The notes beneath the pieces were generated by a model, which did no database searches, was not told the origin of the DNA, and saw nothing but the letters and a program-made list of their open reading frames with translations. DNA of 62,883 nt, filler included, from Lenisia limosa (Eukaryota; Protista; Breviatea), in NCBI GenBank assembly GCA_001655205.1. It is 14 parts of 14 records of this genome, joined end to end, with 100 filler letters (N's around TTAATTAATTAA, not from the genome) between each part and the next. Parts side by side here need not be neighbours in the genome. Positions count along the whole stretch, not along the records: positions 26,168 to 29,650 come from LPNZ01003071.1; 13 more parts are not named here. The stretch is one strand, 5' to 3'. Positions 26,168-30,029 of this stretch are shown piece after piece. Position 1 is the first letter of the stretch; each line of letters starts with the position of its first letter. The translations under genes were made by a program, and so were the position numbers.

Positions 26168-29100
26168 CGGACGAATTGCATCCGCCGCAGCAAGCCTTGG
26201 AAAGCTGCCTGACTTCACTGACATTGCGAGTCTTCTACGTCTTCCAGCTGCCTCACCAGATATGCCAAGTTATGAAGGGTACTGGGATATTCCAGGTGGA
26301 GATATTCTTGGTGATTTAAGTAGTGCAATTCCAGACATTCCCAGTCTATCGGAGATGTCAGCTTCTCTATTAGAGGGTGCTCCGTCGTAAGTTGCCTTAA
26401 TTTTTGTTACATTTTAGTCTCGGTATTGAAATTCCAACAAATGATATTGAAGCTCCTGATTTCTTGGATATTGTCCAGGATGATCCTTTCAAAATGTAAA
26501 GAAGCATTTAAATTGGTCTTATATTTAATTCAGGGTGAACAGTATTAAGGTGCCGTTGAATCTAAGGGCTGGAATTTCTTACGGAAGTGTGAGTCTCTTT
26601 TTTGTTAATGACAACAAAGGTTGAATTCTCGTCGTCGTCATCAGTTCCATTCATTCGAATTCCAAGTGTAAACTGAATATATAATTGTATTATTTTTTTA
26701 GGACACTCCACCAGCGGCTGTGTTTCATCTGTTGCATAGAATATGGAACGTAAATGAACCTCAAGTTTGTAAATACAAAAACATCATTCCCTTTAGTTGT
26801 TAATCTCTCTCATTGGCCCGATGGTTGACTTATTTGATGTGATGGATAGTGAAACACTTGTGAGTTTAGTTTCTTTGCTTTCATTACCTCTTATTAGACT
26901 CGCCTTCAAACAATCTTTTCTTTGAGCATGGTCAAATCTGCTTCCGATATGGGTTCTGCGTTTATGACATCGTGGGTGGTGAGTATCAGCACTAACTGTA
27001 GTTTAAATATTCAATACTGGGTGGGTTGATATGATTATTGTACCTAAATATTATTGGGTTGCCAAGTATTATGAACAATATCTCTTATTAGTGTGATGGT
27101 TAGGATGGCTTTGTACTGATACTCATTTTCCATATGCCATTTCAACATTAATAACGTGCTTTTTCTCAAACTTCTTTCCCATCACGACCTAGGGGTCTTG
27201 AAGCAGGACCAGCTCTAATGGCAGGTGACTCACTTCATGATAGAGTTGAGTCAATCACGTCAATCGGGTAAGAAAATGATAAGATTTGTTGTTCCTAATT
27301 ATTAGTGTTGTGCCTTCTTCACGACTTGCTGGAATTGAGAAATTTAGAGGAAAAAACAGCAAGGTATGTTTTCTCTTTGATTTTATCAACTTATCTTTTT
27401 AGGTTGACTACCGCTTAATAAACCCATCAGGAGATCAGTATTTTATTTTATTTAACATAAGACTGAGACTTGAATCCAGGCACAGTCACTTCATTATTGT
27501 GGATTCTCCTGGGTCTTCAGATTTAACTCTCAAATTCAGGCAGTCCTTGGAACATGTAATTCACTTTTTGCTCATCTTTTTAGTTCTACTCGTCTTTTAT
27601 TCCATTTGTTGTAGTAGTTATTGCTGCTGATTATTTCTCTGTAAAATATTTGAAAGGCCACGTTCAAAACTGTTAGGAACTCCTCTTTGTTTATTGTTCA
27701 AGGTCATCCTGTATTGGTATTCAAAGGAATCGACTCACTTGCCGATAATATTTGTACAAGATATTGCGACAATGTTTGTGAATTTACTAGATTTATTCAT
27801 TTTAGACTGCCTTCCTTGAGAAAAAACGGAAGGCAACAGTCAAAAAGGCTCTCAACAAAGGAGAAACATTTGTGATTGAGCCGAAACCCGAAGAAGGTAT
27901 GTGTAATGCCGTTATTGTTATTTTTAGAAAAACCAATCAAGTGGGCTGAGCATCGTGGTGCAAAATCATTAAATTCCCAAAAGGATAGCAGCATGAAGAT
28001 TGTTGAAATCACTGATGATGAGTAAGTTTGTCTTTTTCGTTCACCTTGCAGAATGGAAGTTATCGAAAGTACAATCTTTACCAACCCTGTGTGCTCTTCT
28101 CCCGACTCTCAAGATGATGAACCACTCTTCGGAAGCGACAGTGAAAGTGATTGTGAAACAGAGGAGGAGCGGCACCAAAGAATTTCAATGGAAGTTGGTT
28201 CTTTGTTTTCCTTTGATGAACATCAAGGTTGATCTTATGGAAATCACTTCTTCGGGCAATCTCTATATTTTCAGCATATCAGAAGCCGAGGGAGTTTATG
28301 ACATTGAAAACTCAGTAAGTGGGGAACGCTCAGCATATTTTCGCGCTTGTACGATCAATTTAAGATGGTACTTTTCTCAAATTTGCTTTTCAGGAATATT
28401 CAATAATTCTAATTCAATTTTCATTTAGTAATTACATGTCTCCTAAAAAGGTTTTGATGGTGTAGGCGGAAGAGCTGACACAGTATGTCCGGTCATTGCT
28501 CAGTGCGACAATGCTGAGAAAAACAGGGCAGGTCGAGAACGACGATGATGAACTTCTGATGCAAGTTGGCTGTCATATTTTCTCATCACTTGTTAGATCT
28601 GGCTGATGTTCGCGGTTTATGTCTTCAATGCTAAAAGTCACAAAAAAGCGGGTCAAAGATTAATGGTCATAATGCTCATACTCAGTTGGTTTGGATGTTT
28701 TGATTTTATATCTTTTGATTTTGATCAGTTCTTTTGAAATTATTCTCGCAATTTCATACAATTAGTATAGTTTTGAATTAATCCATCTCCAGCTGCTGTT
28801 GCAACTTTGGTCTCAGTTCTTCATGCAACTGCTCAACAGGAAGAATACTCCTCAAGTATCACGTTTTGGACCCGTGTCGCTATTGTCAGTAGGCTCACCC
28901 TTTGTATTATCATGGTTTAGTCTTGCCTCTTCTGCTTGGCGTATTCTCAGCTGCATCCAGTAAATTCAATCATTCTGGAAAGGTTTTTTAGCTCTCTAAT
29001 CTAGTGGCTCTTTTTGAGGGCAGCAGGAGAAGCCATTTTGAGTGAAATTTATCGATATCGTTGCTGCGAGGGAAGATATGCGGTTGCTGGAGCTGAAAGG

Positions 29101-29455
29101 TGAGCAATGCCAGATTAGTCATATTTTTTGTCTAATAAAAGTCTTTATATCATCAATTTGTGAAAAAGGAAATAATGGGATATTCATTGATATCTTACAA
29201 ACTTGGAAGGAGCCTTCATTTCTCACTTCTGCAGTCAAACTCGTTTGACCCAACGCATTGCCGGAATCCGAAAATCGCTCCTTGCCTCCAACGTCACCAC
29301 CTCGGCTTTGAAGCAGGTCTGCAACACTGGAAGGATATTGGCTGTTTTTGTTAATATGGATCCTTTTATCTCCAATAATGTTTATCTTCATTCAGCCCTC
29401 ACCTGGAGGCGTGAGGAAGATATTCTCATCAAGACTGGGCCCTCAAGAATTTGAG
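26168..29455 (+). CDS. TRPM-type SLOG (LSDAT) domain fused to a SLATT/DUF4231-like two-TM domain; more than 20 exons, partial at both ends
   Basis: SLOG: GSVEFSSSSSVPFIRIPSDTPPAAVFHLLHRIWNVNEPQLLISLIGP...RLQTIFSLSMVKSASDMGSAFMTSG...SIGVVP...LESRHSHFIIVDSPG...KFRQSLEH...IPFVVVVI...HPVLVFKGIDSLADNIC, collinear with the TRPM N-terminal SLOG domain. SLATT: IWLMFAVYVFNAKSHKKAGQRLMVIMLILTAVATLVSVL...RVAIVILPLLLGVFSAASSKFNHSGKWLFLRAAGEAILSEIYRYR...GRY. Confidence 0.85.
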
Positions 29456-30029
29456 GTGAGACCTGAAATTTGTCCAAGATCCAAAAGGTGTTGTTTGTGT
29501 AATTGAACGTTGAACCGCAATGCTGAGGATACCATATGAGTATTATTTATAATGATATCATATTATGTATTTTGAAAGCATATCATCAAGTAGGTGACCC
29601 CACATAACCGTACCCAGCCACATAACCGTACCCACTTTTTAAAAATGGTCNNNNNNNNNNNNNNNNNNNNNNNNNNNNNNNNNNNNNNNNNNNNTTAATT
29701 AATTAANNNNNNNNNNNNNNNNNNNNNNNNNNNNNNNNNNNNNNNNNNNNTAAGAGGTATTGGATTAGTATAATTTTAATTCACCCATCATTTGCCTTAC
29801 AACTCCGTGCACGATATCGATATTAAGTTGTCTTTTCGGAAAAAAGTGAAGCTGACCTAATGGTCCCCTCTTACTCAGTTTTAACAGGCTCTGGAGGGGT
29901 AGGAGCAGGCCCCACAATTGCACTGAAAAAATGAGGTCAAGCGACATGCAAACGCACTAACTCTGATCCCAAACAGACAAAAGACTCCTCAATCAATGAT
30001 TTTTTTTGTTTCATAAAAATTCTCCCTCC

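Follow-up and report, generated by a model that had tools for sequence, protein, structure and literature searches.

An intron-rich, transcribed gene from a Lenisia limosa assembly encodes a diverged homologue of bacterial SLOG–SLATT proteins

Gene model and transcript evidence

The window analyzed here is a stretch of 62,883 nucleotides (nt), filler included, joined from 14 parts of the Lenisia limosa assembly GCA_001655205.1; the subject of this study is the piece at positions 26168–29650, which comes from contig LPNZ01003071.1. This piece carries a transcribed nuclear eukaryotic gene with very short introns, whose product is a diverged homologue of a bacterial family of single proteins with the domain set LSDAT_prok, DUF4231, and SLATT_1. 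The G+C content of the piece was 38.5%. No long open frame was found in it; short in-frame blocks were located between GT..AG stretches. The locus was present in two public runs, a DNA-like run (3423-nt contig, depth 41) and a polyA metatranscriptome (run X1). Contigs of the polyA metatranscriptome skipped eight GT..AG intervals, all on the plus strand: 26589–26619, 26668–26701, 26765–26796, 26972–27192 (221 nt), 27268–27305, 28565–28596, 28685–28792 (108 nt), and 28889–28920. The locus is therefore represented by a spliced, polyadenylated eukaryotic transcript. A first-pass annotation of the window, made from the sequence alone, had claimed an intron-containing eukaryotic gene, and the RNA contigs bear this out for eight introns. 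Coverage by RNA contigs was absent over 27455–28390 and past 28975.

The gene model (26169–29506, plus strand, as are all features of the gene given below) was built from the RNA-confirmed junctions, frame continuity, GT..AG ends, and homology. It comprises 23 exons and 22 introns, with the frame kept throughout; the 14 introns beyond the RNA-confirmed eight were inferred from frame, GT..AG ends, and homology. The lengths of introns 1–22 were 31, 38, 31, 34, 32, 38, 221, 38, 39, 28, 16, 32, 31, 30, 34, 151, 32, 108, 32, 22, 135, and 79 nt. The G+C content was 43.1% in exons vs. 30.8% in introns. The spliced product within the piece is 701 residues long and has no internal stops. A splice model that followed the longest open reading frames (ORFs) was wrong and was superseded by the RNA- and homology-guided splicing.

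The same contig was found in a second assembly (ENA ERZ3820729, NODE_3939, 4391 nt; locus L001), which was reached by exact-product look-up of an antisense ORF; look-ups of this kind for two other ORFs of the window gave no match. L001 was identical to the piece over 3478 nt and added 913 nt upstream as a single open frame. The start at position 26168, as first annotated, did not hold: the frame is already open there, and about 303 further codons lie upstream in L001. This brings the protein to a minimum of 1004 residues, with the N-terminus lying beyond the contig. Over about 1000 codons (26169–29506 together with the upstream part of L001), no in-frame TAA, TAG, or TGA occurred. The host thus probably uses the standard genetic code, which speaks against ciliates with reassigned stops despite the tiny introns.

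Relationship to a bacterial protein family

A tblastn search with the 31-residue exon 29005–29097 against the plasmids of PLSDB (7.3 Gb) gave exactly two matches, both inside genes for a 'DUF4231 domain-containing protein' (625 and 669 residues). Plasmid-borne proteins of this type include WP_341472297.1 (Candidatus Chlorohelix allophototropha) and WP_243803067.1 (Hymenobacter tibetensis). The two matched proteins both contained LSDAT_prok (E 8e-34 and 5.5e-46, with LSDAT_euk matched too), DUF4231, and SLATT_1, so that a SLOG domain is followed in one chain by two tandem two-helix SLATT-type modules. A search with one of the plasmid proteins yielded 91 clusters, with SLATT_1 recorded in 89 of them and DUF4231 and LSDAT_prok in nearly all. 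The named members of these clusters belonged to Chloroflexota, Myxococcota, Bacteroidota, and Acidobacteriota. One JGI record bore the name 'TRPM family ion channel/conflict system pore-forming effector with SLATT domain'.

A local profile of 643 positions was made from 91 bacterial proteins with LSDAT_prok, DUF4231, and SLATT_1. Against this profile, the spliced model scored 167 bits (conditional E 3e-52), and 200 shuffles of the model scored at most 4 bits. The match was a single collinear alignment of model residues 114–666 with profile positions 10–417 (408 of the 643 positions), running from the SLOG domain through a bridging segment and the two-helix DUF4231/SLATT module to the helix that follows. 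BLASTP comparisons with single family members gave E-values of 1e-13 to 1e-17 at 25–32% identity. Like the bacterial proteins, the product has the SLOG domain, bridge, DUF4231, helix, proline-rich linker, and SLATT_1 lead-in in the same order and with the same spacing, and the motifs HSHF and W..LR..E...EI..YR.....Y are kept in the eukaryotic protein. It differs from them in its low identity (25–34%) and very long branch, in the presence of 22 or more introns, of an N-terminal extension that reaches 400 residues or more, and of an acidic insert (109 residues), in the replacement of several conserved SLOG residues, and in that only the lead-in of SLATT_1 is present in the contig.

Relatives in metagenomes were taken as loci from the best 80 of 213 matches (L004–L083). 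All of these 80 were bacterial-type, contiguous, and without introns, and they were at most 34% identical to the product. No closer or eukaryote-labelled relative was found by profile- and word-based search seeded with the exons of the gene, and none was found in IMG/VR with patterns of the family. In the phylogenetic tree, the protein was placed on a branch of 2.4 substitutions per site (median 0.33). This branch joins the unresolved base of the tree, and therefore the donor lineage cannot be named.

Genomic neighborhoods of the bacterial family were compared over 82 loci (L002, L003, and L004–L083). None of the recurrent neighbors was universal; the commonest, TPR-S, a 'sensor' tetratricopeptide protein, was present at 14 of 82 loci, a GH108 lysozyme that also has a peptidoglycan-binding domain and the lysozyme inhibitor LprI at 10 each, and a large WD40 protein at 8. 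The Chlorohelix copy was located on a plasmid among toxin–antitoxin, PIN, and integrase genes.

Domain organization of the product

The piece opens with the C-terminal end of a long N-terminal extension (26169–26495; exons 26169–26386 and 26418–26495, open frame). The extension is at least about 415 residues long, of low complexity, and rich in Leu, Pro, Ala, and Ser; an RNA contig spans 26203–26361 within it. Its 377-residue N-terminal frame had no Pfam match, no homologue, and no meaningful neighbor in the ESM Atlas, where its model had a pLDDT of 0.48.

The SLOG (LSDAT) domain is encoded at 26534–27773 by ten exons (26534–26588, 26620–26667, 26702–26764, 26797–26859, 26898–26971, 27193–27267, 27306–27363, 27403–27555, 27584–27640, and 27657–27773), with five introns confirmed by RNA. 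Within the 167-bit match, it aligned to positions 10 to about 215 of the family profile. The HSHF motif is located at 27481–27492 and PVLVFKG..ADNI at 27708–27752. The core motifs of the LSDAT family (HSHF strand, glycine-rich loops, and G.G..AD near the C-terminus) are kept in part: H145, S146, H147, F148, G95, G99, G105, R111, G119, P122, A211, and D212 are present, D93, G94, G183, and G208 are replaced, and R196 is missing.

Pfam scans were made exon by exon on ten pieces, whereas the spliced protein was scored against the local profile. Among the ten pieces, only LSDAT_euk and DUF4231 were matched, both weakly: piece 27403–27558 matched LSDAT_euk ('SLOG in TRPM') with E 0.071 at profile positions 132–163 of 266, and piece 29005–29097 matched DUF4231 with E 0.044 at positions 71–96 of 103. 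Both halves that the first-pass annotation had named were thus hit at the level of single exons. Searches with exon 27403–27558 alone were less productive: no TRPM was found among PDB sequences, exhaustive phmmer gave two low-complexity repeat proteins only, the metagenome scan gave no match, and the ESM Atlas search was uninformative. NCBIfam and PADLOC gave no match on single exons.

Next after the SLOG domain comes an acidic insert, 109 residues long and with a net charge of −10 (27806–28193; exons 27806–27896, 27928–28021, and 28052–28193). These exons lie outside RNA coverage and were predicted from frame and GT..AG ends only. In the profile alignment, the insert appeared as one long insertion, which is absent from the bacterial relatives. 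Downstream, a conserved bridging segment, LMEITSSGNLYIFS (28228–28314), occupies family profile positions 219–245 between the SLOG and SLATT parts. It matches LAEIVADGNLHFFN of the Chlorohelix protein, with the conserved E, I, and G kept.

The DUF4231/SLATT module is encoded at 28466–29099 (exons 28466–28564, 28597–28684, 28793–28888, 28921–28982, and 29005–29099), with three introns confirmed by RNA. The first transmembrane (TM) helix, TM1, is encoded across an intron at 28660–28824, and TM2 is encoded at 28858–28946; hydrophobic helices were located at model residues 546–564 and 576–594, with Kyte–Doolittle peaks of 2.46 and 2.10. The motif KW.FLRA..EAI..EIYRYR.....Y follows at 28980–29079. 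In the SLATT signature W..LR..E...EI..YR.....Y, all nine conserved residues are identical to the family consensus (W352, L355, R356, E360, E365, I366, Y369, R370, and Y376). The whole DUF4231 region was collinear with family profile positions 256–417, of which positions 380–417 correspond to a helix after the SLATT module (..TRLTQRIAGIRKSLLASNVTTSALKQ; 29235–29316), with 'LaerveaIsrrLmqtevnlsalkpy' as the family consensus. All motifs quoted in the first-pass annotation were present and in frame after splicing, and the architecture it proposed, in which an acidic linker joins a complete SLOG domain of LSDAT type to a two-helix DUF4231/SLATT unit, agrees with the 167-bit collinear match and the two hydrophobic helices.

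Two very short introns

Two of the inferred introns, both outside RNA coverage, were 16 and 22 nt long vs. 28–39 nt for the remaining short introns of the gene. The first (GTAAAA..GAAAG, 27641–27656) lies between exons 27584–27640 and 27657–27773. With this intron removed and exon 27584–27640 kept, the aligned domain scored 167.3 bits vs. 151.6 with the exon skipped; skipping the exon, which costs about 16 bits, was rejected. The exon matches the hydrophobic strand that precedes the GG loop in the family. A 16-nt intron is favored as the simplest way of keeping this exon, and the interval may instead reflect a sequencing error or a frameshift. The ciliate code, with TAA and TAG read as Gln, was also tried and still did not repair the frame at 27641–27656.

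The second short intron (GTTTTT..TCTAG) was predicted at 28983–29004. Only excision of these 22 nt joins ..FNHSGK to WLFLRA.., which can be compared with FN.G.KW.LLRA in the bacterial proteins; a 59-nt intron in its place broke the frame and lowered the score to 97 bits. The predicted 22-nt intron is required by the homology to the bacterial proteins. Spliceosomal introns of 16 and 22 nt would, if real, probably be among the shortest known and may point to the lineage of the host.

The 3′ end of the gene

In the first-pass annotation, RLGPQEF had been read as the start of a second SLATT module cut by the contig end. This heptapeptide is encoded by the last exon of the model (29396–29506), in which positions 29396–29461 correspond to the linker and the SLATT_1 lead-in (PSPGG..FSSRLGPQEFEVR). 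In the bacterial proteins, about 60 residues separate the DUF4231 core from the start of SLATT_1, whose opening consensus is ..DDGFSALTPERYLEVRLEDQLNYYRKK, and RLGPQEFEVR of the last exon can be set against the family consensus LTPERYLEVR. BLASTP alignments with two family members, P0071 and P0040, ran unbroken from TM2 to SRLGPQEF, which was aligned with SRLSPEQY and KRLTPEEY, respectively. Of the conserved positions P425, P426, G436, L440, Y445, and R449, five of six are kept (P, P, G, L, F, and R). A sub-profile of the lead-in region did not score the motif by itself. The BLASTP run-through and the conserved positions support the lead-in, over a short stretch only, and it is plausible that RLGPQEF begins a second SLATT module of the SLATT_1 type. 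The lead-in thus matched the bacterial relatives at the right spacing, whereas the body of SLATT_1 was not in the contig.

Past 29461 (after EVR), the unspliced frame continues for 14 codons (29462–29503) to a TGA at 29504–29506. At the contig end (29600–29635), an 18-nt unit (CCACATAACCGTACCCAG/C) is present in duplicate, and the summed contig depth there was 1275 vs. 41 for the gene (about 30-fold). This is a high-copy repeat at which the assembly breaks.

The gene could end at the TGA, as a one-SLATT version that has lost SLATT_1 except for its first ten residues. Every simple continuation past 29461 runs into a stop within about 50 nt, SLATT_1 had no match in any frame of 29380–29650, and the sequence downstream of 29461 is A+T-rich up to the high-copy repeat. 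Two family members in the database, P0090 and P0092, also do not have SLATT_1. We nevertheless hold such an ending to be rather unlikely, since SLATT_1 was recorded for 89 of 91 relatives, introns of 108–221 nt in this gene mean that the next exon may lie past the contig end, and the contig stops in a repeat, a typical assembly break point. A next exon beyond the contig is regarded as distinctly more probable than the loss of SLATT_1.

Comparison with TRPM channels and other eukaryotic proteins

Searching PDB sequences with the SLOG profile of the bacterial family gave 59 matches, of which 58 were named TRPM, with TRPM2 as the best (1.7e-21). The description of the SLOG domain as TRPM-like therefore holds, and the product shares this family with the MHR1/2 region (LSDAT_euk SLOG) of animal and choanoflagellate TRPM, especially TRPM2. 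When the entire product is considered, however, its collinearity is with the bacterial LSDAT_prok–DUF4231–SLATT_1 proteins and not with TRPM. Within the contig, it has no MHR3/4, six-helix pore, TRP box, or NUDT9H, and a two-helix SLATT module stands in their place. No MHR3/4 was found after the SLOG domain, where the acidic insert, the bridge, and the SLATT module follow instead. Neither a six-helix TRP pore nor a TRP box was found: the 1004 modelled residues hold two helices of TM strength, and both belong to SLATT. A downstream six-helix TRP pore, which the first-pass annotation had named as the finding that would make this an ordinary TRPM-like channel, was thus absent from the contig.

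Databases already contain long, uncharacterized proteins with this domain set, some of them eukaryotic. Clusters of the ESM Atlas with 935–1079 residues contained DUF4231 and SLATT_1, and one of them also LSDAT_prok; these clusters were 50–80% Eukaryota, with Haptophyta as the commonest phylum in two. The long AlphaFold DB proteins A0A812PM83, A0A813A3B9, and A0A812XZL4 aligned to the bacterial model over SLOG and SLATT; we take their accession blocks to be those of dinoflagellate proteomes. The product shares its annotated domain set with these database proteins (about 740–1080 residues).

Three stand-alone proteins of about 320–400 residues, A0EAB2, W7X7G0, and A0A0V0QZE6, matched the SLOG part of the bacterial model. 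Two of them are named 'LSDAT prokaryote domain-containing protein', and all three are presumably ciliate proteins. A further protist protein with an LSDAT domain is SPIKE1 of Tetrahymena (TTHERM_000686039), a microtubule-bound structural protein of the ciliary tip (bioRxiv 10.1101/2024.12.02.626492). By description, SPIKE1 is like our product in having an LSDAT domain without being a TRP channel; unlike our product, which has a SLATT module, none is described for SPIKE1 in its paper.

In the open literature, eukaryotic SLATT genes are mentioned only in passing: in Emiliania/Gephyrocapsa, a SLATT gene reacts to a quorum-sensing signal in the course of viral infection, and SLATT genes are also found in polinton-like viruses. 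The first-pass annotation had also raised a possible link between TRPM sensing and SLATT effectors. Such a link is not new, because the coupling of SLOG to SLATT and its relation to TRPM are already known from Pfam and JGI names and from a large bacterial family, and the long ESM Atlas and AlphaFold DB proteins share the domain set. The gene is a highly diverged, intron-rich further member of a known SLOG–SLATT design.

Putative function and alternative explanations

SLOG and SLATT are sensor and effector parts of bacterial signaling immunity (Thoeris, CBASS), and animal TRPM2 is gated by ADP-ribose through the same SLOG family. The MHR1/2 region of TRPM2 has been reported to form an ADP-ribose site (PMC13143021). 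The SLOG domain of Thoeris ThsA binds 3′cADPR (bioRxiv 10.64898/2025.12.03.692087). In CBASS and in type VII Thoeris, the latter signaling through cADPR, SLATT proteins are the predicted or assumed effectors that breach the membrane (bioRxiv 10.64898/2025.12.03.692087; PMC7159879).

Taken overall, the protein is probably best explained as a diverged SLOG–SLATT homologue acting as a sensor–effector, with its function assigned by analogy. A self-contained sensor–effector appears likeliest because SLOG domains bind nucleotide derivatives and SLATT modules are predicted membrane-breaching effectors. By analogy with these systems, the cytosolic SLOG domain would bind a nucleotide-derived ligand of the ADP-ribose type. 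Binding would shift the packing or oligomerization of the SLATT helices, and this rearrangement would perturb or permeabilize a membrane. The output may be an ion flux, or growth arrest or cell death in stress or infection. A function as a nucleotide-gated pore or in cell death, as proposed in the first-pass annotation, is thus an inference only. The scheme would be like that of CBASS, type VII Thoeris (ThsH), and type I Thoeris (ThsA), in which a nucleotide-derived signal is sensed and leads to membrane damage or another lethal output. It would differ from Thoeris in that ThsA combines SLOG with SIR2 and ThsH is a SLATT protein adjoining a TIR gene, whereas here sensor and SLATT are in one chain. 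It would also differ from Thoeris and CBASS in that a signal-making partner was seen neither in the 4.4-kb contig nor as a conserved bacterial neighbor.

Several observations weigh against a sensor–effector of this kind. A single transcript spanning the SLOG and SLATT halves was derived from frame and collinearity, and RNA coverage has a gap over 27455–28390 between them. Several SLOG positions that at least 85% of the family share differ here: D93 is replaced by T, G94 by S, G183 by A, and G208 by D, with R196 missing, so that the domain could bind its ligand differently or not at all. No signal-making gene (TIR, SMODS/CD-NTase, or cyclase) recurred as a neighbor across the 82 bacterial loci. 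PADLOC gave a weak '2TM effector' match on one of four family members tried. To these points can be added the absence of the SLATT_1 body from the contig, as described above.

Tentatively, and with more doubt than confidence, we propose a wider reading: protists may have kept a bacterial one-protein, nucleotide-sensing, membrane-breaching effector in a stress or antiviral response. The present copy, with its N-terminal repeats and acidic insert, would form, in a eukaryotic membrane, a SLATT pore gated by a ligand, a non-channel sister to the SLOG–pore coupling of TRPM, encoded by the same gene that would have spliceosomal introns of 16 and 22 nt.

The main rival to the sensor–effector is a protein in which ligand sensing by the SLOG domain has been lost and which would serve as a scaffold anchored in the membrane or as a structural protein, comparable to SPIKE1, with the low-complexity N-terminus as its working part. 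Three of the replaced SLOG residues are glycines, the branch is very long (2.4 vs. a median of 0.33 substitutions per site), and the large N-terminal extension and acidic insert are not found in the bacterial proteins. A structural, non-channel LSDAT protein does exist in a ciliate (bioRxiv 10.1101/2024.12.02.626492). However, the long divergence has left intact the HSHF core, the AD pair, several glycines, and the complete SLATT signature, and the frame is open over 23 exons. Retention of both the SLOG core and the SLATT signature over such a divergence argues for selection on the two modules together, and we judge the scaffold to be unlikely.

An artefact, i.e., bacterial contamination, a chimera of two genes, or a dead pseudogene, might be suspected from the short contig (3.4–4.4 kb) between repeats, from the possible origin of both assemblies in the same reads, and from the odd shortness of the two inferred introns (16 and 22 nt). 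It is very improbable: the spliced RNA contigs rule out bacterial origin, the segment order is that of the bacterial proteins throughout, unlike a chimera, the frame is open over about 1000 codons, and the metagenomic bacterial relatives are without introns and at most 34% identical. An ordinary TRPM-like channel with its six-helix pore downstream of the contig would fit the SLOG domain, which is in the same LSDAT family as TRPM MHR1/2, and the position of the 3′ end of the gene outside the contig, but it is hardly credible, as the SLOG domain is followed by the bridge, DUF4231, the helix, and the SLATT_1 lead-in in bacterial order and spacing, and in the bacterial family only SLATT_1 comes after these.

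As a transcribed, intron-rich gene with the bacterial SLOG–SLATT chain, the locus shows the persistence of this design in eukaryotes beyond TRPM, and it provides a concrete candidate for the use of bacterial-type nucleotide-responsive membrane effectors by protists. Its value is limited in that the pairing is known in bacteria, partly eukaryotic proteins with the same domains are in databases, and the putative function is drawn from analogy.

Repeated sequences in and around the gene

The N-terminal frame contains two occurrences of a segment encoding IASAAASLGKLPDFTDIA, spaced by about 303 codons. In the piece, it is located at 26168–26234; in L001, where the gene is on the reverse strand, it occupies the first ~60 nt and recurs about 909 nt downstream. 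The segment was also found in other contigs at a depth of about 276–280 vs. 41 for the gene. A repeated unit is thus indicated, in tandem within the gene or common to a gene family, and the assembly breaks at it.

Two further DNA contigs (37 and 815 nt) share, but for three differences, a stretch of about 36 nt (27075–27111) with the 221-nt intron, which suggests a small dispersed repeat within it.

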